A model generated the notes under the pieces. The model was given only the letters and a program-made list of their open reading frames with translations, made no database searches and was not told where the DNA came from. From assembly GCF_964204865.1 (NCBI RefSeq), contig NC_135254.1, positions 7,688,001 through 7,752,000 of the forward strand: DNA of 64,000 nucleotides, in the 5' to 3' direction. Of this stretch, positions 25,676 through 57,640 are shown in pieces. Position numbers and translations under genes: made by a program. This DNA is from Styela clava. Taxonomy: Eukaryota. How positions within the stretch are numbered: position 1 is the first letter of the stretch; the number at the start of each line of letters is the position of its first letter.

Positions 25676-26817
25676 ATGGCGAGCGGAGACGGGGTTAATC
25701 GGATTTTTTTATTCGTGCCAATTGGAATTGTTTGATGGTCGGCAGTGTTCTAACTATTGCTTATATGAGAACTCCCATTTCAGCTGTTCCAGTCGATGAA
25801 ATTCATGGCATGGAAGACTTTGAATGGGTACAAGCTGAAAACAAAGATCTACAACGCGGAATAAAAATTCTACATGAGCTAGTAGGACCGGATTCAATCG
25901 CAGTGGATGAGCATGATAACCTATATACGGGGCTCATTGATGGCAGGGTGATGAAAATCATGAATCCAGGGAAAGCAAAACAAAGTGTCGTCGAATTGAC
26001 AAAATCATTCGACTTCGCAGAAGGAAGCAAACGAAATAAAAAGCGTCCACTTGGTCTTCGCCTCCATGGTTCAAAGTTGTATTTTGCAGATGCTTATCAA
26101 GGAATCATAATGATCGATTTGAAGTCCCAGACTTATGATATCATAGTGGACTATGATGATGTCAATCCGCCATTGATACTCCCAGATGATTTGACCATAA
26201 CCTCTGACGGAAAAACAATATATTTCATTGATATGAGTCTAAAATGGACTTACGATGACGTCGCGATATCTATCCTTGAAGGTCAATGCAGTGGGCGACT
26301 ATTTAAAGTTGATGTCTTGACCAAAAATACAGAACTCATTTTGGATAGTTTGTGTCTACCAAACGGCATTGAAATTGTGGAAAATGAAACTCATGTTCTC
26401 ATGTCTGAGCACGGTCGTCGCCGCCTTACATTGGTCAATATCAAATCTGCAGAAGTTGTGCGGCATATCGCTTTTCCGACTGGTACAGACAGCATACGTA
26501 AGAGAAAGAATGGTGGATATTGGGTGGGAATGCCATATATTGCAGAGCCAGGACACTTTGCGACATGGGGCCCCGTATTCCGCGAAATATTTGCTGGCGC
26601 ATTAGGGTCGGGCGGGATTTTCACCAAGTTCGATTTATCCCAAGGAGCTGCTGTGAAGCTAAATGAATACTTTGATCCTGAGAGTATTCATTTAGACTTG
26701 GAAGGCAAATTATGCCGAGCTGTCACAGAAATATCTGAACTGAGCGACGGAACACTTGCTGTTGGTTCCTTCATCGCAAATGGAATTGCTCTGGTTGATG
26801 GTTCAGCTTTTGACTGA
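25676..26817 (+). CDS. Strictosidine synthase-like / APMAP-like six-bladed beta-propeller, copy 1 (1-nt deletion at ~25730)
   Basis: ATG 25676 gives MASGDGVNRIFLFVPIGI, matching the paralogs. ATTGGAATTGTTTG lacks one G versus paralog ATTGGAATTGGTTTG. The remainder is ORF 25732..26817 with GPDS, RPLGLR, LYFADAYQG, GRLFKVD, LPNG and GGYWV. Confidence 0.88.
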
Positions 26818-27886
26818 AATGTTTTCATGCACAATGTAAACTTCGTTTAATTCATTAGTTTAATCTCCTCAGATTGCGTGTTTTTGTCTTGAATGAATTT
26901 ACTGTTAACGATTATCTTTGTGGATCTCCACTCGAGGAGACCCTAATTGCCAGTCGTTATGTCTGTCTGTTTTGCTGTAGCGTCCAAACTGTAGAGGTCG
27001 ATCTGGTTGAAATTTCTCCGTGGCTTGTGCTACCACCCCAGTATTGTGCGTTTCACCAAAAGTTTGGATTGGTATTTGGTTTTCATGGTATCAGCGAGAA
27101 ACGCGCCGATTGTTATTTGTCGCCATTATCCTGTAAACAACTCTAAAAATTAAAAGAGATTGCTACCCCCTCGCAGAAGTAAATACTCGTTTGAACAAGC
27201 CAATTTTCATTTTGTTAATCAATGAACTGGGGAAACGTTAGAAATTATTAGCCGCTCATTAATAAAAATAAAATTGCAGTTTTGGTGACGGGGTTAATGA
27301 AATGCGCTGTCGTTATATCTGCTATTTTGCGTGAATGGCAACGGTTTATTGGAATGCGGCTGCCTGGTGTATCAGTGGAGATCCGGTGTTCCTACCAGCT
27401 TGTTTAGTAATGGTTTAAGTTACAAAAAGGGACCTTCCTCTATCACAGGAATTCCCTAATAGCTCCGGCGATTGAAACAGCAAAGAAGATTCAGATGTAT
27501 ATTCTCGTCGTGCAAAACCAATATGCGATATGAGTAATATATAAAATACATGCAACAAAACACATTTGCAGTTGGCGAGATAAGTCATCTGGTCAGCGAC
27601 ACCTTTCAATATTGCTATCGAAATTCCTGGCTTATTAATATACCCCAAGCTTAAAAATACACTTCGATACTGGGCAAATAATATTTGGATTACAATATTT
27701 CACATTGTTCCGACAAGAAAAAAATCGATATATCGCTATTCGCTAATGATAAATGAGAAGAGTTTACTTTTTATTTTTCCGTTCTATATTCAGTATCGTA
27801 AAAGCAAATTTTTCATTTTTCAAAGGCGATGTTTCAAGATTGAAGAAAAAACAGTATAAATACATGTGGTTATGTTAGGCCGCGGC

Positions 27887-28230
27887 TAGGGCTGGGCATC
27901 GAATATTCCCATCGGTACAGGAGAAAATTTCAGATCGCCGCCATCTTGTTTTTATTTGGCTGCCGAGAGCGAGGTGAATTTTGCAATATTTTGATATTGA
28001 AACCATAATTTTACAAATATAGCTCTTCCCCTTTTTAGTGAGTTGTTGATGAAACATGTTCCTCATTGTGTGTGAAAACTCCGTAAACTGTTTGAGTGAT
28101 GGATTCTATGTTTTAGTAATTTGTGTGCCTGGATGACCCATCTCAATAAAAAAGTCACATACAATAAAATATCTTCCAGGCATTCATGATTAAATTCGTA
28201 AACACATTCGATTTTGAAATCATGAGGTAT
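27887..28230. mobile_element. Truncated hAT element (TAGGGCTGGGC family)
   Basis: TAGGGCTGGGCATCGAATATTC end and CGCCATCTTG match the reverse end of 47409..47821. Confidence 0.55.
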
Positions 28231-28621
28231 TCGAAAAATCTAATCATGGCCAGTGAAGGGGGAAGATCAAAGATTCTTTTCTGATAATAGTCGAATTACA
28301 CAATGGAACTATAAGTTTATTGACCAATGTTGGTTCTAGCATAAGTTATCTTTTCAGAATATATTACTTGACTTTAATAGGCAAGATTTACAGTGAATGC
28401 CGAAGAGTCAGATCCAGTGAAAGATTAACAGAAATAAGTTGTTATAACAAGTCGGGAAAAATTATCGTATTCAACATTTTATTTCATATTGGATTTAATT
28501 CTCTTTATTAAAATATGGCCCAGTCACATCTAGTATGAGTTAGTTACATTATTTCTCTATGGAAGTTCATTGTTGAATATTGTACCCTCGTACATCGAAT
28601 ATCTTCATATTATTTTTGGAA

Positions 28622-29309
28622 CTAAACTCTATCAGCAGAGTTACCCTCATTCGCTTTAGTGTGAATTAGTTCATGCTTATTCGCATTAGCCTTTGTTGTA
28701 AAACATCTTCCACAATGCTTACAAGCATATGGTTTTTCGCCGCTGTGTATTATCAAAACATGTCTTTTCATATTCTGATTCATCGAAAAACATTTCCCGC
28801 AAAGTTTACAAGTAAATGGTTTTTCTCCGGTATGAATTCGGTTATGCCTTTTCAAACTTCCGACATTCGTAAAGCTCTTACCACATGATATGCAAGAAGA
28901 TGATTTGATACCTGTGTGGATTCTCTTATGCATCTTACATTCAGCTGCTGTTGTGAAACATTTATCACAAAATTCACAAGTGAACGGTTTCATCCCGTCG
29001 TGTATTCGAATATGCCGATTCCATTGTCCAGTCATCGTAAAACACTTCCCACAAACTTTACAAGCATGTGGTTTGATTCCCGTGTGAATTTGCTCATGAA
29101 CTTTTAATCCACCAGCCTTTGTAAAACCTTTTCCACACTGTTCACAAACATATGGTCTCTCTCCTGTGTGATCTCTTGTGTGTATTAGTAAATAATTTTT
29201 TCTTTTGAAAGTCTTTCCACAGTATTTGCAAATATGGACTTTACGTTCACAGGGCGTATTCCTACCCTGTTTTGCACTTGTTTTCATATTGTAGCGGGCC
29301 ACAATAAGG
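28622..29309 (-). CDS. C2H2 zinc-finger protein, 7 fingers (terminal coding exon)
   Basis: ORF with seven CxxC...HxxxH fingers and HTGEKP linkers; pyrimidine-rich acceptor TTTCTATTTTTCTTAG just upstream on the minus strand; in-frame ATG at MKTSAK. Confidence 0.9.
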
Positions 29310-29738
29310 CTAAGAAAAATAGAAAGCCAGATAACAATTTAGACTGCACATTCAACTTTGCTAGTTGCCTCAGCTAGCCACAACACTAGTCAATTCAGTG
29401 ACAATAGTGATGTAGCAATATGTCAAATGACTTCGTTTTCTACTTAATATAGGTTACACTATGTTCAGTATAGAAATATCTCTAACATATTTATTGCCTC
29501 TGTTTGGACTAATAAAATCAAATTATTACGCAACACACAGAGACGGGATACCATAATTCTAAGAAGGAGATTTGGGTTAAACGACCGACATGATCTCAAA
29601 ACTTATATCTTAGATATACAATGTCATTTTAATTCGTCCGCTTTCGCTTTTCATCTTCAAAATACGTGCTTATAACAGATTTCAATCTGACACTTTACAA
29701 GCGTTGAATATAAAATTAAACATATCTAAAATGTCTTG

Positions 29739-29946
29739 GGCGCTCCAGAAGTATGTGTACCAATATGAAGGTAAATAAAATTGTTCGCCTATTTTCCATC
29801 AAGTTGTGTAAAGGGACTGAAACCTATGGGCATGGGATATATTCACTAGGCTAACACAGACAGTCCCCGAACTCGTAATAGAACTAAAATAAGGAAAATC
29901 GGAATAAAATTATGGCACATAATTATACACATACTTCTGAAGCGCC
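29739..29946. mobile_element. Family B variant repeat
   Basis: GGCGCTCCAGAAGTATGTGT / ACACATACTTCTGAAGCGCC arms; reverse homolog of 3842..4052. Confidence 0.75.
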
Positions 29947-30439
29947 AAAAATCTGTATTATTTGACAGCGAAACCATCCTCAGAGAAAAAAAAAATAACG
30001 AAATATACTTTAAAACATTTATATACATACTTTGCACAGCGGTCCCAGCTTGTTTCTCTGTCTACTGATACGTGAGCTTGAAAAATATAAGTGACTCAAC
30101 TGTTTGAATATTGGAAGAAAAATGAACTAACCATTCAACATTATTTCCTGTGTCGCATTCGGACCGTACTCGTAGGGAATTTTACACATAAATACTATCA
30201 GCTGCTCCCATGCGTGATAAAACAGGCAAAAAAAATTAAATTGATTTTATGTGGCTTCCGTGATTTTTGGAAAGTGCTGTTAACAACAATGTCCTAAAAA
30301 ACTTCCTCTCCGTTCACGGGAACGAAATTATGCAAGGAAATAGTGTGGAACTTTCAAATAGCTATTCTTGATTCAAATTAGTATATACAATCTTCCAGAA
30401 TCATCAAAACGCACAAAATTAAATTAAGTTTCGATAACA

Positions 30440-31540
30440 CTCGTCACGGTTTCTTGCATAATTGCCAAGCTCAGGCAGTATACCTGTCCTAGTTCTAAAA
30501 ACTTGTTCCTCTGAACTTTCTCCGATTTTATCTACGTTATTTAACAAAAGTTGTGTGGATTCATTTTCCCAGACCTCTTCAGACTTGCTTACCCTTGTTC
30601 CCACCTTTGAAAATAACGGCGATGGGACAGATTCCGGTGAATACCGACATATCAGTCATTTGTAAACTATAAGCAAGGTATTTGAATCACTTATCAAGGC
30701 AGTCATTATATACCACCCAGGATCACATGATCTTTTAACTCAGTGTTTTTCAACCGGGGTGCCGCGGCACACCGGTGTGCCGTAAAATATTGTCAGGGGT
30801 GCCGTGGGAAATTCTCCAATTTGTGTGTCTATGCGGTGTTGCGCCCGGCAGAGTAATCATGTTGTACTGTTCCGTATCAAGGGCGGCGATTTGCCTTGTG
30901 CTCGCAGACGAGAAAAAATGGCCACGCATGTATGCAGCGGCAGTTAGCTGAAACAAGATTGTGGTCACAAGCTAAGTTGATCTACCTTTGGACAGTTTTT
31001 GATTGGCAGCTGCCAAGAAGTTCCCCATGCTGGCCTATAAAACTATTTTGACATTGCTCCCATTTTCCACAACATATCTGTGAGAGGTTACCTTTTCAAG
31101 CCTGACTGCTATAAAAACTAAAAACAGAGAAAGACTGAGAGCTGTGGAGGAAGAGCTTCGTGTGTGTCTTTCTCCGATTCCTGCCAGGATATCAGCTCTG
31201 TCTTCATCCAAACGGCCCATGTTTCACACTGAGTGAGAATAAATATGAACGATTATGAAATACTTTTTGTCTTTGTTTTTATTTGATTACTATTCAAGAT
31301 GTCCAATTCAACATCTTACTTCAGTGTTAAAAAGCTTATATTAACAATATAATACTTATATTGTGAATATTAGGTCTTTTTCCCACATTTTCAGTGGTAG
31401 TGTGCCGCGGGATTTTCTCAACGAAAAAAGTGTGTCTTGGCTTGAAAAACACTGTTTAATTGACAAAAAAACATAATTTTCGTCCAAACGTTCCACCACC
31501 TATTTGTCAACGGTTTGGCGTACCGGATCCTGCAAAGAAT
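30440..31540 (+). mobile_element. Degenerate non-LTR (CR1/L2/Jockey-type) reverse transcriptase fragment interrupted by a hAT element
   Basis: SIPVLVLKTCSSELSPILSTLFNKS...YRHISHL*TISKVFESLI...HDLL, resuming after 31454 as DK...NFR...RST; this is the typical pre-RT motif series (YRPISLL, SKVFE, QxGFR..RST). Confidence 0.75.
30741..31454 (+). mobile_element. Charlie/Buster-type hAT deletion derivative with transposase C-terminal remnant
   Basis: TIRs CAGTGTTTTTCAA / TTGAAAAACACTG; ~31000-31232 reads [39 protein letters not shown]...LRVCLS...VSH* (hAT dimerisation domain). Confidence 0.85.
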
Positions 31541-31930
31541 CTCGTATCGGATCTCCACTCGAATGCACGCATTTTTTGGACTCGGAATACACGTAATTTT
31601 TACTGAGTACTCAATTCCGATTTTACTAATTGATGCCTAAGTTAGGTACTTTTACAGGCGCTCCAGTGTGTGTACCAATATAGAGGTGACTAATTTTGTT
31701 CGCCTATTTTACATCAAGTTATGATGTAAAGGGACTGAAACCCACAGGTAGGGGTGTCACTGTGCTAACACAGACAGTAAACCCCGTACGCCAAAGGGTG
31801 TTTAACATTAACGTAAATTCATTTCTATTTTTCAAACTGAAACCGATATTTAGACAGACAGCGCATGGACTCTCGGTGACAATATGGTCAAGGAAAACAG
31901 CCGAGATGGTTTTAAATGTAGGCCCCTAAT

Positions 31931-32390
31931 TAGGCTTACCATACGTCCCGCTTTAGGCGGGACAGTCCCGCTTTTCAGCGTTTTGTCCCGCCGTCCCGAT
32001 AAGTCAGCCAAAAGTCCCGCTTTTCCAGCATAATACACAAACATGTTCTTGTTACTGTTGTTTCTTTGTAGCGCAGCGCTAGCCTACTTACTGAAGGCGA
32101 ATATCGCATGTAAAACCAATACTAATTAGTCTAAATTCGAAATATTTGTACCGGTATCGTTAACGTCAATTCCTTCCTATTTTTCGAACTGAACCCGATA
32201 TTTTGACAGAGAATATGCGCATGAAATTTCGATAACAATATGGTCAATAAAGACAGCCGAGACAGCTTTAAATGTAGGAATGTAGGCCTATGTAGTAAAA
32301 TCGGAAAATGTGAAGTTATAAAATCACAGCTAAGGGGTCGTTGTCTTCCGAGGCGTCCCGATTTGAAGTCACAAAAATATGGTAACCGTA
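31931..32390 (+). mobile_element. hAT (Tip100/Zaphod-like) MITE nested in another copy of its own family
   Basis: TAGGCTTACCATA / TATGGTAACCGTA termini; GTCCCG subterminal repeats; exact TSD CCCCTAAT; the outer copy ends at 32487 (TATGGTAACCCTA). Confidence 0.8.
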
Positions 32391-34169: not shown

Positions 34170-35318
34170 TCAGTCGGAAGTTAAACGATCAACCAGAGGA
34201 ATTCCATATGAAATGAAGGATCCAACCACAAGTGTTCCGTCGCTCAGTTCAGATACTTCTGTTACAGCTCGGCATAACTTTCCTTCCAAATCTAAATGGA
34301 TACTCTCAGGCTCAAAATTCTCATTTAGCTTCACAGCCGCTCCCTGACCGAAGTTAAACTTGTTCAAAAGACCCCCCGGTCCTAATGCAGTTGCAAGCAT
34401 GTCGCGGAATACAGGATCCCATGTCACAAAATGTCCCGGTTCTAGAAAATATGGCATTGGCACCCAATATCCACCATTCTTTGTTTTACGTATATTGTCT
34501 GGACCAGCCGGGAAAGGGATGTGCCGCACAATTTCTGCGGATTCGAGGTTGACCAATGTAAGGCGCCTGGCGCTTGGGCTGTGCTCGGACAGAAGAACAT
34601 GTGTTTCATTTTCCACAATTTCAATGCCGTTTGGTAGACACAAATTGTCCAGGATGAGTTCTGTATTTTTGGTTAGAACATCCACTTTAAATAGTCTTCC
34701 GGTACATTCACCTTCAAGGATAGAAAAGGCGACGTCATCATAATTCCACCTTGTACTCATATCAGTGAAATATATTGTTTTTCCATCAGAGGTCAAGGCC
34801 AAATCATCTGGGAACAACATAGGCGGGTTGACGTCAGTATAGTGAGATATGACGTCATAAGTCACGGTATTCAGATCGATCATAATGACTCCTTGATAAG
34901 CATCTGCAAAATACAACTTGGAACCATAAAGGCGAAGACCAAGAGGACGCTTTTTCTTTAGTTCACTTCCTTCTGCAAAATCGAATGATTTAGTCAAATC
35001 GAAAACCGTTTGGTTTGCTTTCCCAGGATTCATGATTTTAATTACCCTGCCATCTTTAAGTCCAGCATATATATTATCATGCTCATCCACTGCAACTGAC
35101 TCTGGTCCTTTCAATTCGGGTACAATCTTTATTCCGCGTTGTAAGTCTTTATTTCCAATATTCACCCAATCAAATTCGTCCATGCCTTGTATATCGTCGA
35201 CCGGAACTGATGAAGTTGGTGATCTAACATAAGCGATAGTTAGAACACTTCCGACTATTAAACCAATTCCAATAGGCACGAATAAAAACATCCGGTTAAC
35301 CACGCCACCTCCCGCCAT
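34170..35318 (-). CDS. Strictosidine synthase-like / APMAP-like protein, copy 2 (382 aa, intronless)
   Basis: N-terminal signal-anchor; GPES, RPLGLR, FPDDL, YFTD, LPNG, GPDNI and GGYWV motifs of the SSL/APMAP family. Confidence 0.93.
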   Translation of the reverse strand: MAGGGVVNRMFLFVPIGIGLIVGSVLTIAYVRSPTSSVPVDDIQGMDEFDWVNIGNKDLQRGIKIVPELKGPESVAVDEHDNIYAGLKDGRVIKIMNPGKANQTVFDLTKSFDFAEGSELKKKRPLGLRLYGSKLYFADAYQGVIMIDLNTVTYDVISHYTDVNPPMLFPDDLALTSDGKTIYFTDMSTRWNYDDVAFSILEGECTGRLFKVDVLTKNTELILDNLCLPNGIEIVENETHVLLSEHSPSARRLTLVNLESAEIVRHIPFPAGPDNIRKTKNGGYWVPMPYFLEPGHFVTWDPVFRDMLATALGPGGLLNKFNFGQGAAVKLNENFEPESIHLDLEGKLCRAVTEVSELSDGTLVVGSFISYGIPLVDRLTSD

Positions 35319-36781: not shown

Positions 36782-37066
36782 GGCACTCCCGAAGTATGTG
36801 AACCAAGATGGCAGACACCAGAACGTAGTATGTGTACCAGGTTAGGATTGGGCCATAATTTCAAGTACAAATACCACGGGAAATAGAACTAATATTAGGA
36901 AAATTGAAATAAAATTATGGCCTAACCCTAACCTGGTACACATACTACGCTCTGGTGTCTGCCATCTTGGTATACATACTTCGGGAGTGCCCTTTATTAT
37001 ATAGTCGTGCCACACATACCACGTTCCGGTATCCGCTGTCTTGGTTCACATACTTCGTGAGTACCC
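36782..37066. mobile_element. Family B palindromic repeat with duplicated arm
   Basis: Typical arms plus an extra right-arm remnant at 37015-37066. Confidence 0.8.
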
Positions 37067-38079
37067 AATAAAGTCTTTTGAACGTTGGCATCATTTGTGT
37101 AAAATTTCAGACATGGAAATACGCTAATTTTGTTTGCCCCGAGACTGGTTCTTCCACGACATGTATGTTTTAGATTTCTCAAAGTAGAAAAATACAATCT
37201 AAACTCTAATGTGTTGAAAACCACCTTTCTTATGTAGTAGAATAAAAACGAGTTGTGGAACAATAAGCTCTTTAACAAAATTAGATTTGATCCAAACAAT
37301 AAAACTGTGTGCAGCGGCGCGGATTCACGAAAAGGTGTGCTTGCCGAGTTTGTGAAACTCTCAGATATTTTCGTGTGTTGCTCTTTGCAAAGCACACAAT
37401 AGGTTCGATAAAGACGCCAGTAAAGACCTTTATTGTTCAGCAGAGATGGGCGGATTTGAACTGATACATCACATTCACATAGCAACCAAAACATGTCCGA
37501 TCCTAGCAGCAGTCAGACCAGAAAAAGGAATTACACGTTTCAGTGTCGTGCGCAGAGGTGATCGCAGTCGAGCAAGGAATAGCCAAATCTGACCCATTGG
37601 GCAATGTTTTAGTCAAAACAGCTCTGGCTCCGCAAAATCTGGACGCGATACCAAGACAATATAAATAAATACAAGAGAGCTAAGCCCAAATATGTGGACA
37701 CGGAGAGAAAAACTGAATATTTTATCATCAATTCCCGGAAAATCATATGCGGTAACTTACCAGTGGCCGTATCGGAAGGCGAATAACTCGACTACATGGA
37801 CAACTCTCCAGAGAAAACTCGACTACCCATGGTACCGGTAACGGTACAGAGACTGTTATAGCTTTTCCAGGTCCTGGGACGATGATCCATTTCTTCATGA
37901 TTCAGTTTCAACGTGGATTGAAATACCAACTGATCCGAGCCATTTCTGCATTACCAGATCAAGAACCACAGTCTACCGATCCTCTTGAAAAACTTCACTT
38001 TCTCTAAACACGAGATCCGCCGACTTTCGCTGAGCACGCGATCCACTGATATGCGTTCGCGGAACCACCACAATGTGCG

Positions 38080-39916: not shown

Positions 39917-41053
39917 ATGGCGGGAGGAAACGTGGGTAATCGGATGTTTTTATTTGTGCCGATTGGAATTGGTTTGTTAGTAGGAAGTGTTCTAACTATC
40001 GCTTATGTTAGATCACCATTTTCAGCTCTCCCGGTCAACGATACACAAGGCATGGACGACTTTGATTGGGTAAATTTAGAAAATAAAGACTTACAACGCG
40101 GAAGGAAAATTGTATCTGAATTAATAGGACCAGAGTCAATCGCAGTGGATGAGCATGATAACCTATATACTGGACTCCAGGATGGCAGGATAATGAAAAT
40201 TATAAATCCCGGACAAGCAAACCAAACAGTTATCGACTTGACAAAATCATTCGACTTTGCAGAAGGAAGCCATCGAAAGAAAAAGCGTCCTCTTGGTCTT
40301 CGTCTCCATGGTTCAAAGTTGTATTTTGCAGATGCTTATCAAGGAGTCATTATGATCGACTCAGAGTCACGGACTGTCATAGTACATTACAATGACGTCA
40401 ACCCTCCCTTGGTGTTCCCAGATGATTTGACCATGACATCTGATGGAAAAACGATATATTTCACTGACGTGAGTTTAAAATGGGGTTATGATGACATTAT
40501 TTTTTCCGTTCTTGAAGCTGAATGCACCGGCCGACTTTTTAAAATTGATGTTTTAACGAAAAATACCGAACTTATTTTAGATAGTTTGTGTATATCGAAT
40601 GGGATTGAAATCGTGGAAAATGATACTCATGTTCTTCTGTCCGAACACAGTCGTCGACGTCTTGCATTGGTTAATCTCAAATCGAAAGAAGTTGTGCGAT
40701 ATATTCCACTCCCGGCTGGTCCAGACAACATAAGGAAGAGGAAGAACGGTGGATATTGGGTGGGAATGCCCTATATTGCAGAGCCGGGACACTTTGCGAC
40801 ATGGGGTCCCGCATTCCGCCAGATACTTGCTGGCGCACTAGGATCCGACGGCGCCCTGACTATGTTAAACATAGACCAAGGAGTTGCTGTGAAGTTAAAT
40901 GAAGACTTTGAGCCAGAGAGTATTCATTTAGATCTGGAGGGCAAACTGTCTCAAGCTATCACAGAAATATCTGAACTGAGCGACGGAACACTTCTAGTTG
41001 GGTCTTTCATGGCGAGTGGAATCGTGCTGATTGATCCTTTATTATCTGACTGA
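39917..41053 (+). CDS. Strictosidine synthase-like / APMAP-like protein, copy 3 (378 aa from ATG 39917)
   Basis: MAGGNVGNRMFLFVPIGIGLLVGSVLTIAYVRSP aligns with the paralog starts; the upstream 50 codons of the ORF track are not conserved; full SSL motif set. Confidence 0.93.
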   Translation: MAGGNVGNRMFLFVPIGIGLLVGSVLTIAYVRSPFSALPVNDTQGMDDFDWVNLENKDLQRGRKIVSELIGPESIAVDEHDNLYTGLQDGRIMKIINPGQANQTVIDLTKSFDFAEGSHRKKKRPLGLRLHGSKLYFADAYQGVIMIDSESRTVIVHYNDVNPPLVFPDDLTMTSDGKTIYFTDVSLKWGYDDIIFSVLEAECTGRLFKIDVLTKNTELILDSLCISNGIEIVENDTHVLLSEHSRRRLALVNLKSKEVVRYIPLPAGPDNIRKRKNGGYWVGMPYIAEPGHFATWGPAFRQILAGALGSDGALTMLNIDQGVAVKLNEDFEPESIHLDLEGKLSQAITEISELSDGTLLVGSFMASGIVLIDPLLSD

Positions 41054-44704: not shown

Positions 44705-45880
44705 CTAGGTGGAAACATCCGTCGAAAGAAGAGGGTCCACTGGAGGAGGTAGAGGATCAACCAAAGTGATTCCATTTGAGATGGCAGATCCGAGTGCAAG
44801 TGTTCCGTCGCTCAGTTCAGATACTTCTGTGACACCTTGGGACAGTTTGCCTTCCAAGTCCAAATGGATACTCTCGGGTTCAAAATTTTCGTTTAGCTTC
44901 ACAGCCAATCCTTGGGATAAGTTGAATTTGGTCAAAGTGCCTTCCGACCCTAATGCGCCGGCAAGTATCTGACGGAATACAGGAGCCCATGTCACAAAAT
45001 GTCCCGGTTCTGGAATATATAGCATTGCCACCCAATATCCACCATTCTTCCTCTTTCGAATGTTGTTTGGCCCAGCCGGGAGTGGGATGTGTCGCACAAC
45101 TTTTGCAGATTCGAGATTGACTAATGCGAGGCGTCGATAATTGTGCTCGGACAGAAGAACATGAGTTTCATTTTCCACAATTTCAATGCCGTTTGGTAAA
45201 CACAAACTATCTAGGATAAGTTCGGTGTTTTTGGTTAAAACATCAACTTTAAATAATCTTCCGGTGCAATCACCTTCAGTAATGGCTAAGGTGACGTCAT
45301 CGTAATTCCACTTTACACTCATATCAGTGAAATATATTGTTTTTCCATCAGAGGTTATGGTCAAATCATCGAGAAACAACAAGGGCGGGCTGACGTCATT
45401 AAAGTCCACTATGACATCATAAGTATGCGACTCTGAGTCGATCATAATGACTCCTTGAAAAGCATCTGCAAAATACAACTTTGAACCATGAAGGCGAAAG
45501 CCAAGGGGACGCTTTTTATTTCGTTTGCTTTCTTTTGCATAGTCGAATGATTCCGTCAAGTTGATGACACTTTGGTTTGCTTTCCCAGGATTTATGACTT
45601 TCACCACCCTGCCACCTTTGAGTCCAGTGTATAGGTTATCATGCTCATCGACTGCGATCGACTCTGGTTGCACTAGTTCAGGAAGAATTCTTCTTCCGCG
45701 TTGTAAGTCATTATTTTCAACCTGTGCCCATTCAAAGTCGCTCATGACGCGGAAATCGTCGACCGGAACAGCTGAAACTGGAGATCTAACATAAGCAATA
45801 GTTAGAACACTTCCGATCATTAAACCAACTCCAATTGGCACAAATAAAAACATCCGGTTAACCTCATCTCCTCCCGCCAT
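44705..45880 (-). CDS. Strictosidine synthase-like / APMAP-like protein, copy 4 (391 aa)
   Basis: Intact ORF; QPES, RPLGFR, FLDDL, LPNG, GPNNI; Pro-rich C-terminal tail. Confidence 0.93.
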   Translation of the reverse strand: MAGGDEVNRMFLFVPIGVGLMIGSVLTIAYVRSPVSAVPVDDFRVMSDFEWAQVENNDLQRGRRILPELVQPESIAVDEHDNLYTGLKGGRVVKVINPGKANQSVINLTESFDYAKESKRNKKRPLGFRLHGSKLYFADAFQGVIMIDSESHTYDVIVDFNDVSPPLLFLDDLTITSDGKTIYFTDMSVKWNYDDVTLAITEGDCTGRLFKVDVLTKNTELILDSLCLPNGIEIVENETHVLLSEHNYRRLALVNLESAKVVRHIPLPAGPNNIRKRKNGGYWVAMLYIPEPGHFVTWAPVFRQILAGALGSEGTLTKFNLSQGLAVKLNENFEPESIHLDLEGKLSQGVTEVSELSDGTLALGSAISNGITLVDPLPPPVDPLLSTDVST

Positions 45881-46877: not shown

Positions 46878-46921
46878 GTGTACGATGTAGATGATAAACC
46901 GCAGGACTCCGCTACACGCAC

Positions 46922-47247: not shown

Positions 47248-47408
47248 ACGACCGGTACAGTAAAAATACTTCAATTGTGATATTATGCTCGGATAAAATG
47301 CAACAGTTTGTAAACACGAATTTACTCTATCACATAACCATTAGTCAAACTGAGCCCCGGATACCGTTTTTTCCATAGAACCCGACCAAGGGTAGATAAA
47401 GTCGTGAC

Positions 47409-47821: not shown

Positions 47822-48470
47822 GTCGTGACCCATCAGCGATGGATGTTCCACGATCTTTGACCCCGCAAAAATCTTCCTATACTTCACTGTTGCCAAATTT
47901 TTTATGCTTATTTTTGAAGAGTTGGCGCTTATAAACTGGGTTATACACTCAGAACCATTATTCCAGTTGAAAACATTTAACCACGTGCTCCTTACAGGTA
48001 CTGATAGTTAATTTTAGTCTCGTCTATCGAAGATTTTTCGGGACAAATTTTTGATTACTGCAACTAAACTAAGCTCACGGGAAGACATTATGACATTTAA
48101 TCTACTTGATTGCAACTATTTCTTGGAAACAGAACTGAAAAATAACATGCAAAACCACGAAAACAACCCCTGATTTCCTCCACGACGTACATCATGAATT
48201 ATGGCGGCTCTCAAATATCAGTTTAGCAATCATTACCAGGGGGTAAACAGGTATGCGAGTGGAGTTGTGGACAGCTAGCGAATCCAGTCGGAAAATGTGA
48301 ACGTTCAAGAGTCTTAATTAAGGGTCTAATAGGCTTTTCAAGCCACACAAATTTCAATGTATGATACAAAATACATTTTTTTGCAAGAAAACATTTTTTC
48401 AATTGAATAGAGTCATTTACAAAAAGACAGAGTCGTTTATGAATGAATCAAGTTGCTCTTCACAATTAAA

Positions 48471-49643
48471 CTAGATAGAAACATCCACCAAAGGATGATC
48501 CACTAGAGGAGGTAAAGGGTCAACTGAAGCAATTCCATTTGAGATGGAAGATCCGACTACAAGCGTTCCGTCGCTCAGTTCAGATACTTCTGTGACAGCT
48601 TGGGACAGTTTGCCTTCCAAGTCCAAATGGATACGTCCAGGTTCAAAGTTTTTATTCAACTTCACAGCCACTCCTTGGGTTAAGTTGAAGTTGGTCAAAG
48701 CGCCTTCCGACCCCAAAACCCCGGCAAGTATTCGGCGGAATACGGGACTCCACGTCATAAAATGTCCCGGCTCTGGTATATATGGTATTGCAACCCAAAA
48801 TCCGCCGTTTTTTCTTTTCCGTATGTTGTCTGGCCCAGCCGGGAGTGGGATGTGTCGCACAACTTTCGCAGATTCGAGGTTGACCAATGTGAGGCGCCGA
48901 TAGACGTGCTCGGACAGAAGAACATGAGTTTCATTTTCCACAATTTCAATTCCGTTTGGTAGACACAAACTATCCAGAATGAGATCGGTGTTTTTGGTTA
49001 AAACATCAACTTTAAAAAGTCTTCCGGTGCAATCACCTTCAATACTAGAAAAGGCAACGTCGTCGTAATTCCACTTCAAACTCATATCAGTGAAATATAT
49101 TGTTTTTCCATCAGACGTCAAAACCAAATCATCAGGAAACAACATCGGCGGGTTGACGTCATTATAGTTTACTATGATGTCATAGTTTTTAGTTTCCAAG
49201 TCGATCATAATGACTCCTTGATATGCATCTGCAAAATACAACTTTGCGCCATGGAGACGAAGACCAAGAGGGCGCTTTTTCTTTCTTTTGCTTCCTTCTG
49301 CAAAGTCAAATGATTTTGTCAATTCGATGACTGTTTGGTTTGCTTTCCCGGGATTCATGATTTTTATTATCCTGCCATCTTTGAGTCCAGTGTATAGGTT
49401 ATCATGCTCATCCACTGTGATTGACTCTGGTCCTATTAATTCAGGTATAATTTTTATTCCGCGTTGCAGGTCATTATTTTTAACTTGTGCCCATTCAAAG
49501 TCGCTTATTTCGTAAAATTTCTCTACCGGAAGAGCTGAAAATGGTGATCTCATATAAGCGATTGTTAGTACACTTCCGACCATCAAACCAATTCCAATTG
49601 GCACAAATAAAAACATCCGATTAACCACGTCTCCTCCCGTCAT
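48471..49643 (-). CDS. Strictosidine synthase-like / APMAP-like protein, copy 5 (390 aa)
   Basis: Intact ORF; GPES, RPLGLR, FPDDL, LPNG, GPDNI; closest to copy 4 at the C-terminus. Confidence 0.93.
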   Translation of the reverse strand: MTGGDVVNRMFLFVPIGIGLMVGSVLTIAYMRSPFSALPVEKFYEISDFEWAQVKNNDLQRGIKIIPELIGPESITVDEHDNLYTGLKDGRIIKIMNPGKANQTVIELTKSFDFAEGSKRKKKRPLGLRLHGAKLYFADAYQGVIMIDLETKNYDIIVNYNDVNPPMLFPDDLVLTSDGKTIYFTDMSLKWNYDDVAFSSIEGDCTGRLFKVDVLTKNTDLILDSLCLPNGIEIVENETHVLLSEHVYRRLTLVNLESAKVVRHIPLPAGPDNIRKRKNGGFWVAIPYIPEPGHFMTWSPVFRRILAGVLGSEGALTNFNLTQGVAVKLNKNFEPGRIHLDLEGKLSQAVTEVSELSDGTLVVGSSISNGIASVDPLPPLVDHPLVDVSI

Positions 49644-52600
49644 TTTTTGTAATGAGGGGCGATGTCAAAATCTCAACAATCTTCTAATTAACTACGACGT
49701 ATTGCAGTATACGAGTTAAGCTTGGATGATACCGTATTGTGGTCTTCCAAGCGATTGACACTCAAACACTCTTCATATAGTTGAAATTAAAGCTCTAGGC
49801 AACGATTATTACGTCGAAGCTTAATAAAATACGATTAGCCAGCTTTGTTAACGTCAAAATCATTGCTTGACGGAAGATTTTCCTAAAACCTCTGCGTTAG
49901 CTCGTTAGCCTACAGGCAGACAATAACTTTTCGGTTGGATTCGAAGTATTGGCGACCGCGAGTGTATATAGGCAAAAGACATAGCAACAGATTTAGATTT
50001 TCAAACTTAACCGCCCGGTTCGATAACTAGCTGCGAATGCACTACGGATAGTCAATTTGCGAGTCATGGCCTAAATGGGATTACTGTAACGATTTTACCA
50101 GTTTACTGTTCAGCCCTAAATGGGATTGATTATCACAAGTATCTTTACCAGTTTTCCGTTCCTCATGCATGGATGGTAATCGGTGTAAATTCAATACTTC
50201 TTCTTTGCAAAACCTTCCATCTTGTATTCTGTACGTTTTAAACCTTATCTTAGGTTTTGCTTGCTCTCCCGATTTTATAATCATATTTCAATCATTTTAT
50301 TGTTATGCCGATTATGGAGAAATAAACTTATACTATACTTATAAACAAAGAGAGAGAGTGATGCTCAAATATATGGACACAAAATAGGTTATCAATTTCC
50401 CACAGAAGTCCATCGGTACCGCACCACAACAGCTGATCATCAAAAATCAACTTGCGCGAAAGAGGAACCGCCACATGGAGCGCAATTTTTAAATTTGATA
50501 ACGTCATCGCACACAAAAAGCGAACTGCGTAAAGGTCACAGGCATTTTTGGAAAAAATAAAAGTAATAGCATTCTAGCGAAAAATACAATGTTAAACCAT
50601 TGAAAATTTCAATGCGATCGGTCCAGTAGTTAATGAGAAAGGTGATTTTTTTTATAAGAGGAAGAAAATACTAACTTGATCAACAACAACATGATAACAA
50701 AACGATTCATTTGTACATTTCGTTTCCAATGATAACAATCGCGTACATTACACAGATGAAAAATATTTACAGACGGGTTCATTTTTTATACAAAATCGTA
50801 AATTGCAGTTACTATATTTATCACTACACAGACGGAGACCCACGCGATTCGGTTGACAAAGAACTCCGCAAAATGCCGTTACCTGCAGCGATTACGTGAA
50901 TAACCGTAGTAGACAGATTGCAAACCAACGCAGGGTAATAGCTGATGCGATAGCGGACGTTTTCCTAACGCAGAGCATGTTAGCTCATCAGTCGGCGTCA
51001 TGTATGGCAATGCACAGACTATAATCGGGTTTGTTCTCTCGTTCATATCCCATACAGTAGGAGAGAACCTATGAATAAGGCTTGGGGATACGTCATAGAA
51101 GAACCGAGATTATGGTTCAATATGACTTTATTCACTGAGCGATAATACAACATTACTGATCAATCACAATCATACAATGCCTTTTGCTGAACCCAATTAA
51201 TTTCTTGACAATGATCCTCTTTTTGTGACAAAAAAACTCAACCCTCAATAAGATTTGCTTATTTTAAAATAAGCCAAATTTAATTCTGTGAACTTGCACA
51301 AAAAGCAAACAAAGCATATGTCAGAATAAGCAAAATATGGATAAAGATCAAAATAAGCAACAAATAAATGAAAGATTCTCTGTTGTACAACTCTTTTCAG
51401 TGCTTGGTGGAAGGGACTTATTTACTGAGAAATACTCATGAATGGCAGAATTCATTTTTATTCACTGCACTTGTGATTCTTAAGTAACTTGTATAAACCA
51501 GTTTCTTACTAATTACAAAAAATGAATATTTTTCTTTTTTGGTTATGATTTTGTTTCAAGATAAGAGAACTAACAGAAAGTGTACGTAAACAAAGTTGAT
51601 ACTAATCCAAACAAATTATTTTATACATATTGTTGCAACAAGTAGAATAACATATATTTTCAAAATAGAAACAGGTATATTACCCTAAATTCCCATAATA
51701 GAGTTGCCAGAGAAGCTTCAGTCCATCTCAGTTTAGTTTTTTCAAGCAGTGAATACACGCAAATTGTTTTTTATACTCCTCTAAGGCATCGTATTCAAAC
51801 AAGTATAACATATAAGGAGAAGATTTTTATAAAATACTATACTTTTCAAACTTTCATAATTCGATAGTTGAAGGTACAAGGCTCAAACGGCGAAAAAGTA
51901 GAACTAAATCTATGCACGACTGCTGTGCATTTTTTGTTGTATTCGCAAAATATCAAATACAGTACAAAACACCATTTACAAGCCAATTTTTTTAACACAA
52001 GGAATGAAAATTGTATAAAAACATGTTCACAGGGACGATAATTTAAAAATAAATTTAAGAAAAATATTTCTACTCCAAGAAATAAATATGATTGGATACA
52101 AATAACACAAACGACAGTTAATCGACTGAAAAAATCTTGAAATTATTACAAAGCAATAAAGTATAGTGGCAGTTGTAATAGACGATTTGATGCTGTAATT
52201 GAAAATTATTTGGAAAATTAGAGCAAGGGTAGAGATACTCTATGAAATTTATAAATAAATTTGTGAATTCTGACCGACATTTTTCAGATGTCTTGCTGAC
52301 AGTAAGGTTAAAGCAGGACCAAAACAAAAATTTTCTAGAGTAGAGGATTGACACCATTATTTTGCTGCATAATACATAAATCTGAAGATAAATTTTTAAA
52401 TGAATTTGAAAAAAAAAAAATATCCAGATAAATACACGCTCAATCTGAACTTCCAAGAGAGATGTGAAAGGTTCTCACAAGCTATACAGGTACATTCTTG
52501 ATAAAGAACAACAACCATTTATTCGAAGGTAGGCCCCCTTATTAATGAGCAAGGGCAGCATGTGCATCCTCAAATGGTCAACTAAAGATCAGTTTTATCT

Positions 52601-53261
52601 CTTGAGAAAGGTGGAAAACAGGTAAGCCCACTTGCAAGAATTATGACAGCAGTAAAGGAAATTCACATATGTGAGTATGTTCTATGAAGAGAACACTGAG
52701 TTGAGACAAATTAGAATTGTTATGTGCAAGATACAACGAATGGTATCTGATCTGATTGAAAGTGAAATCCCATATAAGCCAGTGGTTGATTCACCGGGGG
52801 CCAAAATTAGAAGCGGAGGATATCCGCGGACCGAGAGAGGGGAGCGCCTGCAAGGAGCAGATGCTGGTACATATAACTGAGATACTAGTATAATTGAATT
52901 GGTATGTTTATACACATGCTTAAACTGTGATAATGATGTAACAGTGAGCGGTATTTAGAAAGCAAAACGGTAAAAACAAAGTGTTAAACTATTTGACTTA
53001 AGTTCGCCGGGCCATATCAAATCGCTACGTGGGCCGTAATTGGCCCATGGGCCGCAGTTTGGGAACCAGTGTTCTAGACAAAGTAACACTCTCGAGATGT
53101 TACAAGGCCATGATTGGCTATGAATAACCACCAAAAGATGGTATACGAGACCATGCTTGACTATGAATACCAACTACTCATGACAGTGAAATAACTACTA
53201 ATTAAATGTTCCCTGATTCCTGTAAGCTGTACCTGATCTGTGCAGTTTATTTTGTGCAGTT

Positions 53262-54170
53262 TCAAACACCACAGAGATCAAATAATTCATTTGCACCTTC
53301 AAATGGCTCAAGATTAAACACATAGTCCAATGTTGGAGGTGGAGACAGCCTCAGTAAAGGAGCAAAATCTTCTGTTTTCAATAAGTCGAAAAGATCGCCA
53401 GAATCATCAATCGGATCGAATAGCTCACTGATAGAAGGTGGCGCGTCCATTTTGTCATGTGCTAAGACATTGGTAGGGATCTTTGAAGATAAAACTGGGG
53501 GCTCTTGAATTGGATTTTCTGGCTTCAATAGAATAGGCTCAGGCAGATTTTCTGGAGGAGGCACAGGAACAGCTACAGGTGCAGATGTGGTAACATCTTT
53601 ATTGACAAGGAGAACAGAAATAGGACCTGATGAGGATCGTAAATGGATTTGATACCTCCTGTCACCAGTTGCTGTTTGTTCGGGCACTGGTACTTCAAGT
53701 TGAGTTCCAGAAGGTGCTTGAACTGCGAGTAACGTTTGATCTTTAAAGCAACTACAAACATCTTCATGTGTAACGTAAGCCAATTTATTGTTGTCAATAT
53801 CATCAGTAACGTTTCTGATGCTTTGATGAACCCACATTTGTTGCTGATCAATTTCTTTTTCCTTTTCTTCTAATGAATAGATCTGTGATCTCAGGGCATT
53901 TATTTGTGTTGAAACTTCACTGTTTGTGCCACCCGGTCCTGCTCCCTTCCATTGTATACTATTCTTCGAACGTTTTTCAATTAATCCAATTCCTTCTAGC
54001 ACATTTGTTATGTCGTAAATGCGACGTTTTTGCCGCACAGCAAGCTGGTCCGCGGCTACTTTTAAATCCAATATTCCGTCTTTTGCTTCTTGTAACAAAG
54101 TAACGAATTTTGTTGTTAGAAGGCCAAGAGACTTCTCATGCCGACTTGTTGAGGCATCTGTGATAGACAT
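53262..54170 (-). CDS. E2F4/5: Transcription factor E2F4/5 (intronless CDS, 302 aa)
   Basis: SRHEKSLGLLTTKFV...AVRQKRRIYDITNVLEGIGLIEK (winged-helix DBD with very short N-terminus); marked box LAYVTHED/TLLAVQAPSGTQLEVP; C-terminal pocket-binding FAPLLRLSPPP..DYVFNL...EG..ELFD. Confidence 0.95.
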   Translation of the reverse strand: MSITDASTSRHEKSLGLLTTKFVTLLQEAKDGILDLKVAADQLAVRQKRRIYDITNVLEGIGLIEKRSKNSIQWKGAGPGGTNSEVSTQINALRSQIYSLEEKEKEIDQQQMWVHQSIRNVTDDIDNNKLAYVTHEDVCSCFKDQTLLAVQAPSGTQLEVPVPEQTATGDRRYQIHLRSSSGPISVLLVNKDVTTSAPVAVPVPPPENLPEPILLKPENPIQEPPVLSSKIPTNVLAHDKMDAPPSISELFDPIDDSGDLFDLLKTEDFAPLLRLSPPPTLDYVFNLEPFEGANELFDLCGV

Positions 54171-54710
54171 GGCCCCAGGAACAATTCAAAATAATATTAT
54201 TAGATAGCTATTTTGGCTATATCAATGCTAGTGATAGCTGGAAAAATAAAACATCAACATTTATTACTAGGCATTACTGCTCTACACAAATGGTGGCAGC
54301 TTTATTAGAAATAGATTTATTAATGTATCCAAAAACAAAATATTTACCTGTAAGAGAAACCTAACGCAACAAGAAGATATTAATTCAATTAAGACCAAAC
54401 AAACAATCTAACTGGTTTTCTAGAGTAAAAGCATAAATCAGTTTTTAAAAGTATGGGTCATACTATGTATATACCGAAATAATGCCATGGTCATAATATG
54501 CGAGAAATAAAACATGATAAAAGCAATTAATTTTTAATATGGAGCGTTGCTATCTTACTGAGACTTGTTTGTTTAGTTTAGTGTTGTTTCAACTAAGTAC
54601 ATACAGTGACCTCTGTTAATTGTTAATGACCTCTGTTAGACACGCAGACTCAGTAGTGTGGGCATACCAAATTTGCTGAATAGCGATAAAAGTTGAACTG
54701 GTTTTTAAAA

Positions 54711-55361
54711 ATTTCTTCAAATAGCATAACATACCGAATTCTTGGAATAAATGACTTCAATGATGTCATGAATTTGCTTATAACTGACTACATTACAGAA
54801 GAGCCAATTAGCATGATGTTGGGCATCACTGAGGAGATTCTGGGGACAAATTTGAACGAGCGTTTGAAGGAATATTTATCAGAAAAGTTCTGTGTTGGCG
54901 CGTTTGATAGCAGATCTAGCTGTTTGATTGGGGTAGGAGTGGGATATACTGGAGATAAAGAAGAAAAATCAATGAACTCGGACACAAGCACAATTCCAGT
55001 TCATGTACGCCAAACTGACGCAGTCTGGAAAGAACTTCTCGATGGCACCAAAGAAGAGCGCTTAGGCACTAAGAATATTTTTCATTTGTATGTTTCGTGT
55101 GTAAAATATGAATACGCAGGACAAGGTATTGCAGCTGAAATGTGTGAAAGAATGCAAAAAATTGCAATAAGTCAAGGTTGCAAGAAAGTATCAGCTATCG
55201 CAACAAGCTACTATGCCCAGAAAGTTTTCAAAAATTTTGGGTTTGATTTCATCAAGTCAATTTTCTATGAGGAATATATAGACCCAGTAACTGGCAACAA
55301 GATATTTAATAACATGCCAAAGCCTCATGAAAAAGTAGTTTTTGTCATGAAAAATCTGTGA
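54711..55361 (+). CDS. GNAT acetyltransferase, insect arylalkylamine/dopamine N-acetyltransferase-like, copy 1 (start codon reads ATT)
   Basis: YITEEPI (F..DEPL-like), motif A VKYEYAGQGIA, ATSYYAQKVFKNFGF, Y..YIDP..G.KIF...PKPH. The position homologous to the ATG of copy 2 is ATT (54711). Confidence 0.8.
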   Translation: MSSNSITYRILGINDFNDVMNLLITDYITEEPISMMLGITEEILGTNLNERLKEYLSEKFCVGAFDSRSSCLIGVGVGYTGDKEEKSMNSDTSTIPVHVRQTDAVWKELLDGTKEERLGTKNIFHLYVSCVKYEYAGQGIAAEMCERMQKIAISQGCKKVSAIATSYYAQKVFKNFGFDFIKSIFYEEYIDPVTGNKIFNNMPKPHEKVVFVMKNL

Positions 55362-56078
55362 TTGTAAATGTGCAGAGTGACCCAAATAAACATTACCTAT
55401 ACATTTTTCATAATTTCAATTTCAATAATTTCAGTAACTTTAAGGCTGCAATTATCAGGGGAATCCCCATAAAGGTGTGTGTCCGAGCGATTTAACAATT
55501 TTCAACAAAGGACGGTTTCACAAGTTTGTCTCCAATGCCAAGGAGATCTTTTGGAACCAATATGAGAGAGAACATAATTTTTGTATAAAGCTTCCCAGAT
55601 TTCTGAAATGCTTCATTTTTAATCTTTTTTAAATAAGGCGATATTTCATGCAGCGATTTTTCTTATGCGACAAAATTTCCTGTGGCAAGATTTCCTACGG
55701 CGAATTTTCCTAGAACAATTTCATATATCCAATATAAATTCAGTTATCATAGAAATAATAACTCATTGATTCATTATAAACTCATGACATATCTGAACAT
55801 TAAATTGTTTCTGCTTTATTGAGAATATTATGTGATATGAAATCATTATGTATTTACTAAATGTTGAAACAAACAAAAAATGATTTTTTGTTGGAAATTG
55901 ATAATAAAATTATTTGGATGTGGTTTTGTCTATATTATTCAGTTTATATAAGTTGAAGTATCAGTTATGCATAGTAGATGGTTGTCAAAGCTGAAAAAAT
56001 ATAAAAAATGAAATACATAAAACTACCAATAGGTTTACGAATGAATCAATTTAGAAAAAGCTTATTTGTACTAATTTT

Positions 56079-56307
56079 GGTACTCCGGAGGTATGTGAAC
56101 CAGGATAGCGGTTTAGTGGACACCGGAACATAGTATATGTGCCACTACCAGGTTAGGCCCTAATTTTATTCCAATTTTCCTTATTTTAGTTCTATTATGA
56201 GTTCTATGGACTAGCCAAGTGACTCCCGTAGTATTTGTACCTGAAAACACATACTACGTTCCGGTGTAAACTATCTGCCATCTTGTTTCACATACTTCAG
56301 GAGTACC
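56079..56307. mobile_element. Family B palindromic repeat; a partial copy also lies at ~56810-56936
   Basis: GGTACTCCGGAGGTATGTGAAC / GTTTCACATACTTCAGGAGTACC arms. Confidence 0.78.
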
Positions 56308-56989
56308 CTTATTTTAGAGATTGCTTGAGACTGACAGAATGGGATAAATAAGTTATTTGCAAAACAAGGAGCTATAGAAAGTTAGACATCGAAAGAGAAT
56401 TATTCACACACGCATGCAAGTTTAAAAATAACAATTTGCGCAGTCACTGCCAGTTGATTTTGATTGCATATATCCGATCAATTATAAGTATTGTATAACT
56501 AAATTGTTTTACAGCTTGTTTGATCAGTTACAAGGGGAATGCTGCAGGGGAGAGAGGGATGCTTGTTTGTTTAGTGTTGTTTAACTTGGTGTACGCTCAC
56601 TTTATTAACATAGTACCTCAGTTCGTTAACCATCAAATATACTGGTAACAAAAAAATTATATCACCGTAGTTTGCAGATAGCAAGTACGCAAATGGCTTC
56701 TTTTCGTCGGTTTACGAGTCCAAGTCAAGTATGAGAACAGCTAACCCTTTAATTAAGTATATGCATAGGTTCAGATAATGGAGGAAACTAAAGCAAATGA
56801 TACAAATCACCGCTAGTTCCCGAACTTGTAATAGAACTAAAATAAGAAAAATCGGAATAAAATTATGGCCTAACCCTAAAATAGTACACAAACTACGTTC
56901 CAGTGTCCGCCATCTTGGTTGACATACTTTGAGAGCAAAATTTAACCTACGGTATGTCATTGAATTCCAGGTTGTAACTCCATTCAACA

Positions 56990-57640
56990 ATGTCTTCAAA
57001 TAACATTACATACAGGATTCTTGATTCAAATGACTCCAATGATGTCATGAGTTTGCTTATAACTGACTACATTACACAAGAGCCAGAAAGCATAAAGTTG
57101 GGCATGACTGAAGAGATTTTGAGAAAATATTTGAACACACGCTTGATAAAATATTTATCAGCAAAGGCCTCTGTTGGGGCATTTGACAGCAATTCTAGCT
57201 GTTTGATTGGGGTAGCAGTAGGTTATACTGGAGGAAAAGAAGAAAAATCAATGAACTCAGACGCAAGCATGATTCCAGTTTATGTACGCCAAGCTGAAGC
57301 GGTCAGGAAACAACTTATTGGTGGAACTAAGGAGGAATGTCTAGGCACTCTGAAGTTTCTACATTTGTATATTTTATGTGTAAAAAATGAATATGCAGGA
57401 CATGGTATTGCAGCTGAAATGTGCAAAAGAATGCAAAAAATTGCAATAAGTCAAAATTGTGAGAAATTATCGGCTATTGCAACAAATCATTATGCCCAGA
57501 TAATCTTTAAAAACCTTGGATTCGACTTCATTAAATCAATTTCCTATGAGGATTACATCGACCCAGTAACTGGCAACAAGATATTTAAAGACATGCCCAA
57601 GCCTCATGAAAAAATGGTTTTTGCTGTGAAAACACTTTGA
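56990..57640 (+). CDS. GNAT acetyltransferase, insect AANAT-like, copy 2 (216 aa, intact)
   Basis: YITQEPE, VKNEYAGHGIA, ATNHYAQIIFKNLGF, YEDYIDPVTGNKIFKDMPKPH; close tandem paralog of copy 1. Confidence 0.88.
   Translation: MSSNNITYRILDSNDSNDVMSLLITDYITQEPESIKLGMTEEILRKYLNTRLIKYLSAKASVGAFDSNSSCLIGVAVGYTGGKEEKSMNSDASMIPVYVRQAEAVRKQLIGGTKEECLGTLKFLHLYILCVKNEYAGHGIAAEMCKRMQKIAISQNCEKLSAIATNHYAQIIFKNLGFDFIKSISYEDYIDPVTGNKIFKDMPKPHEKMVFAVKTL

Follow-up and report, generated by a model that had tools for sequence, protein, structure and literature searches.

The window analysed here, a stretch of 64,000 nucleotides from the tunicate Styela clava (C5:7688001-7752000 in a genome of 377 Mb), carries five strictosidine-synthase-like (SSL) genes and, beyond them, two genes of GNAT acetyltransferases. 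We consider it probable, at about 70%, that these are two independent lineage-specific tandem arrays of S. clava which are neighbours without being functionally coupled. In this account, the first array would comprise five paralogues of the APMAP/hemomucin branch, four of them predicted to be intact type II membrane proteins with calcium-site positions in a six-bladed propeller, and its proteins would hydrolyse esters or lactones in the lumen of the endoplasmic reticulum (ER) or at the cell surface, in line with reports on APMAP, PON1 and rice TGW6. The second would comprise two paralogues of the insect-type arylalkylamine N-acetyltransferases (iaaNATs), putatively cytosolic as they have no signal sequence, which would acetylate an amine with acetyl-CoA, the conserved Glu of an E-P motif acting as the general base. 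Both arrays would evolve by birth and death, with one damaged copy each, and coding-intronless copies of both families are dispersed over many chromosomes.

In the open reading frame (ORF) listing, the coding region of each of SSL1-5 and GNAT1-2 was a single uninterrupted ORF, colinear with its homologues. All five SSL ORFs matched the Pfam families PF03088 (Str_synth; E = 3.6e-15 to 6.1e-18), PF20067 (SSL_N) and PF08450 (SGL), which places them in the six-bladed propeller family, and both GNAT ORFs matched the GNAT families PF13673 and PF00583. A preliminary description of this DNA had named five SSL genes in the order +,-,+,-,- and, about 5 kb beyond, two genes of the insect-AANAT type. The ORF listing and Pfam agree with it for all five of the former, Pfam and a full-length alignment of GNAT2 to the structure 4fd5 confirm the latter, and its assignment of the SSLs and GNATs to their families holds. 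It had also called the stretch an enzyme island. The seven ORFs are indeed present, but a C2H2 zinc-finger ORF breaks the series, as does an E2F4/5-type gene, which sits in the 5-kb gap separating SSL5 from GNAT1. The genes of the two arrays, and the gene between them, are as follows.

SSL1, 25676..26817 (main ORF 25732-26817), + strand: APMAP-type SSL copy with a 1-nt deletion near 25731
SSL2, 34170..35318, - strand: intact, 382 aa, single ORF
SSL3, 39917..41053, + strand: intact, 378 aa from the Met homologous to the paralogues' start (mechanical ORF from 39767)
SSL4, 44705..45880, - strand: intact, 391 aa
SSL5, 48471..49643, - strand: intact, 390 aa
E2F4/5-type transcription factor ORF, 53262..54170, - strand: Pfam E2F_TDP and E2F_CC-MB; belongs to neither family
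GNAT1, 54693..55361, + strand: iaaNAT-like; the start position reads ATT
GNAT2, 56990..57640, + strand: iaaNAT-like, intact, 216 aa

The SSL proteins: anchor, calcium site and catalytic position

SSL2-5 were observed to carry a hydrophobic 19-mer at residues 10-28, with a Kyte-Doolittle 19-residue maximum of 2.24-2.38, followed by SSL_N and Str_synth. This type II architecture, with an N-terminal signal anchor, is absent from the frameshifted SSL1, where the maximum is 1.47. APMAP and Drosophila hemomucin are alike in having a hydrophobic N-terminal anchor before an SSL_N and Str_synth propeller, and allelic and paralogous S. clava proteins are named 'adipocyte plasma membrane-associated protein-like' by NCBI. 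Vertebrate APMAP is a single multi-exon gene, whereas the SSLs of S. clava form at least 16 coding-intronless copies at no fewer than 7 loci. APMAP was shown to be an ER membrane protein of type II whose PON1-like arylesterase domain lies in the lumen (PMC10849633).

Among solved structures, the best match to the SSLs was rice TGW6 (PDB 8KG3), a hydrolase of IAA-glucose (IAA, indole-3-acetic acid), with an E value of 2.2e-19 for SSL2 alone and 5e-51 for a 16-sequence profile. Strictosidine synthases ranked after it (STR1, 2FP8: 1.9e-13 with one sequence and 5.4e-33 with the profile). The site residues of TGW6 are E59, N167, N226 and N272 (PMC10958001). Chain indices were converted to TGW6 residue numbers by a constant offset of 28, which fits all four site residues, and hidden Markov model (HMM) alignments then placed SSL2 E73 (GPES), D171 (PDDL), N230 (PNG) and N273 (PDN) opposite them. 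TGW6 and the tunicate SSLs have the motifs GPES, PNG, PDN and TEV.E..DG in common; the differences are that TGW6 is a plant protein and that it has Asn where the tunicate SSLs have Asp171. No Ca2+ was seen in the TGW6 crystal (PMC10958001), and the physiological role of the protein is disputed (bioRxiv 10.1101/2020.10.14.340042).

By this mapping of the active site, which rests on sequence alignment, the four calcium-site positions (E/D/N/N) are kept in four of the five copies, SSL2-5, a further likeness to APMAP and hemomucin; SSL4 has PNN in place of PDN, with the calcium-site Asn retained. The exception is SSL1, in which two positions read D and S (GPDS for GPES and TDS for PDN). The preliminary description had cautioned that most such proteins keep their Ca2+ ligands and are predicted hydrolases or lactonases, and SSL2-5 bear this out. 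STR1, a Pictet-Spenglerase of the same fold family (PF03088), has N/W/G/N at the same four positions, and SSL2-5 would thus lack the metal-free pocket of a strictosidine synthase.

In STR1, the residue central to catalysis is Glu-309; SSLs without it had no STR activity, and all rice STR-like members are reported to be without it (PMC5537339). In the profile alignment, Glu-309 stands opposite Thr353 of SSL2, in a weak stretch (independent E value, i-E, 9.7 to 2600) whose register is uncertain, and the HMM alignment shows TGW6 to carry the same TEV.E..DG motif as the SSLs. We take the 322-residue chain 2fp8_A to be STR1 residues 23-344, which makes the Glu of EHFEQIQE-HDG Glu-309; TGW6 presumably belongs to the rice STR-like family mentioned above, judging from a guessed locus id. 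The replacement of the STR Glu by Thr, as claimed in the preliminary description, therefore stands in this alignment but not in a register shifted by one residue (see below). Given an anchor that matches that of APMAP, we infer that SSL2-5 are anchored lumenal or extracellular hydrolases of esters or lactones, and probably not Pictet-Spenglerases.

Horizontal transfer was considered as the origin of the intronless SSLs and rejected. The tree roots the tunicate copies apart from bacterial-type proteins named as 'YvrE' lactonases, on long branches, and the animal-type anchor architecture is common to every S. clava copy, even to the C9 copy, which diverges most. As it stands, the value of the SSL data is descriptive: they document a large expansion of coding-intronless, APMAP-type propeller hydrolases, with at least 16 copies in S. 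clava. No description of an SSL/APMAP expansion in tunicates was found among the literature matches listed, and 'strictosidine' has no mention in the main text of the S. clava genome paper.

The GNAT proteins and their probable transcripts

Residues 4-214 of the 216 residues of GNAT2 align to Aedes aaNAT2 (4fd5) with an E value of 4.6e-9. GNAT2 has seven best PDB matches with E below 0.01, four of which, besides 4fd5, are chains of the iaaNAT type. A dopamine N-acetyltransferase-like protein, AgmNAT and Drosophila Dat align to it more weakly. In insect iaaNATs, the Glu of a DEPLN motif is the general base, Arg-153 and Asp-46 form a salt bridge, and a His is conserved (PMC6070697). The two tunicate proteins share with these enzymes (4FD5, Drosophila Dat 3TE4, AgmNAT 5K9N) the Glu-Pro and a C-terminal Pro-His, besides the full-length alignment of GNAT2 to 4FD5. 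The DEPLN of 4fd5 lies opposite QEPES in GNAT2 and EEPIS in GNAT1, so that the Glu is kept, with only E-P of the motif retained. The active-site His (His-220 of Dat, His-206 of AgmNAT) is kept as well: PKPHEK, present in both GNATs, stands opposite PPPHES of 7ciu/5k9n and PPHEK of 4fd5, and in a 26-sequence alignment P205 is invariant and H206 nearly so. The salt bridge is absent in the alignment, with Gln or Glu in GNAT1 and GNAT2 at the position of Asp-46 and Ala at that of Arg-153 (EYAGHG against SRFRGKG; AGHGIA in GNAT2).

A word search of proteins matched only the window's own two GNATs, and an exhaustive search was therefore used. It yielded 215 proteins with E of at most 0.001, 27 at 1e-10 or below and 7 at 1e-30 or below, the best non-self match being 38% identical; identity to S. 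clava paralogues is only 36-38%. The ten matches that were looked up comprise seven S. clava proteins, one from Ciona intestinalis and two Logan proteins. Insect-type aaNATs have previously been reported from Ciona (two) and Saccoglossus (four) (PMC4394704), and a literature search for 'Styela clava' together with 'arylalkylamine N-acetyltransferase' found no co-mention. This divergent iaaNAT-like pair, keeping the catalytic Glu, and the expanded SSLs are candidates for ordinary enzyme assays.

Neither GNAT has a signal sequence by Kyte-Doolittle 19-residue maxima (1.06-1.12). Since SSL2-5 have a signal anchor and the GNATs do not, different compartments are predicted for the two families, lumenal or extracellular for the former and cytosolic for the latter. 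Peroxisomal targeting of the GNATs was also considered, and rejected, as their C-termini, -KNL in GNAT1 and -KTL in GNAT2, are non-canonical by the consensus for the peroxisomal targeting signal PTS1.

Assembled contigs from four runs of three studies (X1, X2, X4 and X6) were aligned to positions 51700-57699, which hold the E2F gene, GNAT1 and GNAT2. With only 52-79 Mb of contigs, as against a genome of 377 Mb, and strongly uneven coverage of the region, the runs are likely to be RNA, although their kind is our guess. In X1, single contigs without any differences span 53142-54239 (E2F), 54496-55716 (GNAT1 in full) and 56906-57699 (GNAT2 in full), and the lack of contig joints inside the ORFs fits intronless transcripts. 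Pieces of both GNATs are present in all four runs, with no joint inside either ORF. The word depth in X1 was 91.6 over the E2F ORF, the highest in the region outside repeat bins, 5.5 over GNAT1, 11 over GNAT2 and 0.11 over 54300-54499; contig depth is a poor measure of expression, and contigs cannot rank it. The E2F4/5-type gene appears to be transcribed. Its contig and that of GNAT1 lie head-to-head with about 257 bp between their ends, which suggests a shared bidirectional promoter for the two genes.

These data bear on the idea that the region is jointly regulated as a xenobiotic or defence domain, with hydrolases and conjugating acetyltransferases induced together but not acting in one pathway. 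Both families are expanded and lineage-specific, of kinds often tied to detoxification, and both are under purifying selection (see below); APMAP has been linked to redox and lipid protection (PMC10849633), and GNAT sequences occur in the contigs of every run. However, the gene with which GNAT1 shares its head-to-head interval is the E2F gene and not an SSL, and the depth of the E2F ORF differs strongly from that of the GNATs, for what contig depth is worth. We regard such a domain as unlikely.

Local birth, damage and the adjacency of the arrays

Both families have expanded locally, as the preliminary description had claimed. In a 23-row tree, the five SSLs of the window form one clade at 100/100 together with three allelic proteins from an older annotation (SSL2 is identical at 100% to database protein P0003, and P0005 corresponds to SSL4). 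GNAT1 and GNAT2 are sisters at 100/99. Over ten pairs, the SSLs are 74.2-78.9% identical, with a synonymous divergence (dS) of 0.44-0.70 and a ratio of nonsynonymous to synonymous divergence (dN/dS) of 0.195-0.283; the GNAT pair is 73.1% identical, with a dS of 0.51 and a dN/dS of 0.289. Both arrays are under purifying selection, and ratios of 0.2-0.29 at a dS of 0.44-0.70 indicate long-term constraint.

One member of each array is damaged at its 5' end. The preliminary description had started SSL1 at 25676, a start that has to be abandoned: the ATG frame there encodes MASGDGVNRIFLFVPIGIV and then stops, after 19 codons. Compared with the 5' ends of its four paralogues, SSL1 is without one G after codon 18 (GGAATTG-TTTG), and this 1-nt deletion puts the main ORF, from 25732, into another frame that lacks the hydrophobic anchor. 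P0006, an older S. clava model of the protein from this gene (335 aa; distance in the tree about 0.012), likewise begins at an internal Met, which suggests, without proving it, that the lesion is not an assembly slip. GNAT1 reads AAA ATT TCT TCA opposite the ATG TCT TCA of GNAT2. Its first ATG is codon 26, at 54768, giving a protein of 197 aa without the first 25 residues, as in database protein P0001 (197 aa). For GNAT2 itself, the database model P0002 has 123 aa from Met94, as against an intact 216-codon ORF fully covered by a contig, and the public gene model may be truncated.

It could be supposed that most of the copies are functionless, decaying retrocopies and the whole island genomic debris. 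All copies are coding-intronless, SSL1 and GNAT1 carry the 5' lesions just described, and broken family copies occur elsewhere in the genome. Against this, five of the seven ORFs are intact over 216-391 codons, the dN/dS values given above hold at considerable dS, the conserved site residues are kept, and the GNAT ORFs lie in probable RNA contigs, so that we give this explanation hardly any credence.

Across the genome, the SSL family has 19 matches on 7 contigs, five of them in the window. Nine of those outside are full-length and without stops (three each on C4 and C13, two on C6 and one on C9). The broken ones are a C19 copy split over two frames, which accounts for two matches, a C4 copy with a TAA and two fragments on C18. 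The three C13 copies (C13:14317421-14318533, 14361089-14362201 and 14366860-14367972; L014 and L015) encode identical proteins of 407 aa from the first Met, and two of them lie in inverted orientation about 5 kb apart; they reflect either a very recent duplication or a duplication in the assembly. The GNATs have 34 matches on 10 contigs, two in the window and six long single-frame matches elsewhere (C10, C17 and four on C13); the remaining 26 are C-terminal and exon-sized, and 14 of them form an array at C19:4.70-4.88 Mb. In the tree, the GNAT pair falls within a clade of six rows (99/98) with S. clava paralogues on C10, C13 and C17 and one other protein. As the closest kin of the pair are on other chromosomes, the subfamily has spread by dispersed duplication, and only the copy in the window landed beside SSLs.

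On the adjacency, our reading differs from the preliminary description, which proposed the two arrays as a candidate specialised-metabolism cluster encoded by an animal, with arylalkylamines (tryptamine, dopamine) as their shared chemistry and chemical defence or tunic tanning as its purpose. In a metabolic gene cluster, the genes for non-homologous enzymes of one pathway are physically clustered; here, the SSL and GNAT arrays lie 5 kb apart with the E2F gene between them. A functional adjacency would make this one of the rare gene clusters for specialised metabolism that an animal encodes, in a group noted for unusual natural products derived from amines.

The observations that weigh against two uncoupled arrays are largely those that would favour such a cluster. 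With 9 SSL and 13 GNAT loci placed at random in 377 Mb, some SSL-GNAT pair would fall within 6 kb with a probability of about 0.004, and within 150 kb with one of about 0.09; these probabilities are not a test, as they are post hoc, the pair having been chosen after it was seen and from among very many family pairs and windows. There is a second, looser proximity, the only other one between the families in the genome: the split SSL copy on C19 (C19:5025223-5026360, L016), with residues 1-309 in one frame and 310-382 in another, is separated by 142 kb from the end of the GNAT array on that contig. With similar dS values (0.44-0.70 and 0.51), the arrays may be the product of expansions at about the same time. 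The GNATs are iaaNAT-like and retain the catalytic Glu. A link of the SSLs to indole or arylalkyl compounds is not far-fetched either, because TGW6, their closest solved relative, recognises an indole ring (PMC10958001). Finally, the alignment scores around STR1 Glu-309 are insignificant, and an ungapped register anchored on DG would place Glu354 of SSL2 at that position.

Nevertheless, we found no support for a shared arylalkylamine cluster beyond proximity. The families are dispersed, and within the genome the linkage is not repeated: among the genome-wide matches, there is no GNAT within 100 kb of any of the eight other SSL loci. The arrays are separated by an unrelated E2F gene that occurs in a single copy, and the predicted compartments differ, SSL2-5 being lumenal or extracellular and the GNATs cytosolic. 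The SSLs have hydrolase-type residues at the calcium site, with Thr opposite Glu-309 of STR1 in the weak stretch. Each array has one damaged gene, and the closest kin of the GNAT pair reside on other chromosomes. We therefore consider the cluster to be highly unlikely. A two-enzyme module for indole or arylalkylamine compounds is also conceivable: in the secretory pathway, an arylalkyl compound would be freed or remodelled by the anchored SSL hydrolases, kin of the indole-recognising TGW6, and it would be N-acetylated by the GNATs for tunic hardening or chemical defence. Such a module keeps a very small probability because of the nominally improbable adjacency, the similar ages of the arrays and the catalytic Glu kept in the GNATs. 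The coincidence of two independent arrays remains the reading that we prefer.

Neighbouring features and minor observations

Two further features in or near the arrays belong to neither family.

C2H2 zinc-finger ORF, 28622-29302, - strand: between SSL1 and SSL2; 226 aa with at least 6 fingers (Pfam)
Foldback repeat, resembling a miniature inverted-repeat transposable element (MITE-like), 56118..56908, no strand assigned: just upstream of GNAT2

A second long C2H2 zinc-finger ORF, of 308 aa, was observed at 1487-2413 (+). The E2F4/5-type ORF of the window has no second full match of its type in the genome, where the one other match is a single exon-sized piece on C6. The window has no N runs, and Rfam found no structured RNA in 25000-58500.

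The arms of the foldback repeat (56118-56204 and 56822-56908) are 87 nt each, inverted and 82% complementary, with 617 nt between them. A contig depth of about 10^4 and many joints at the arms in all four runs mark the element as a repeat that is abundant and dispersed. Two ORF-like stretches at 10668-11080 and 36997-37494, the latter between SSL2 and SSL3, have a VCEPR.R.PER motif in common and are probably copies of a dispersed repeat. An ORF at 19731-20060 (+) has a short collagen-like Gly-X-Y run (GPVGPKGSRGFKGEQGSTGE) behind a signal-like start, and may be an exon from a gene of the collectin or C1q type.

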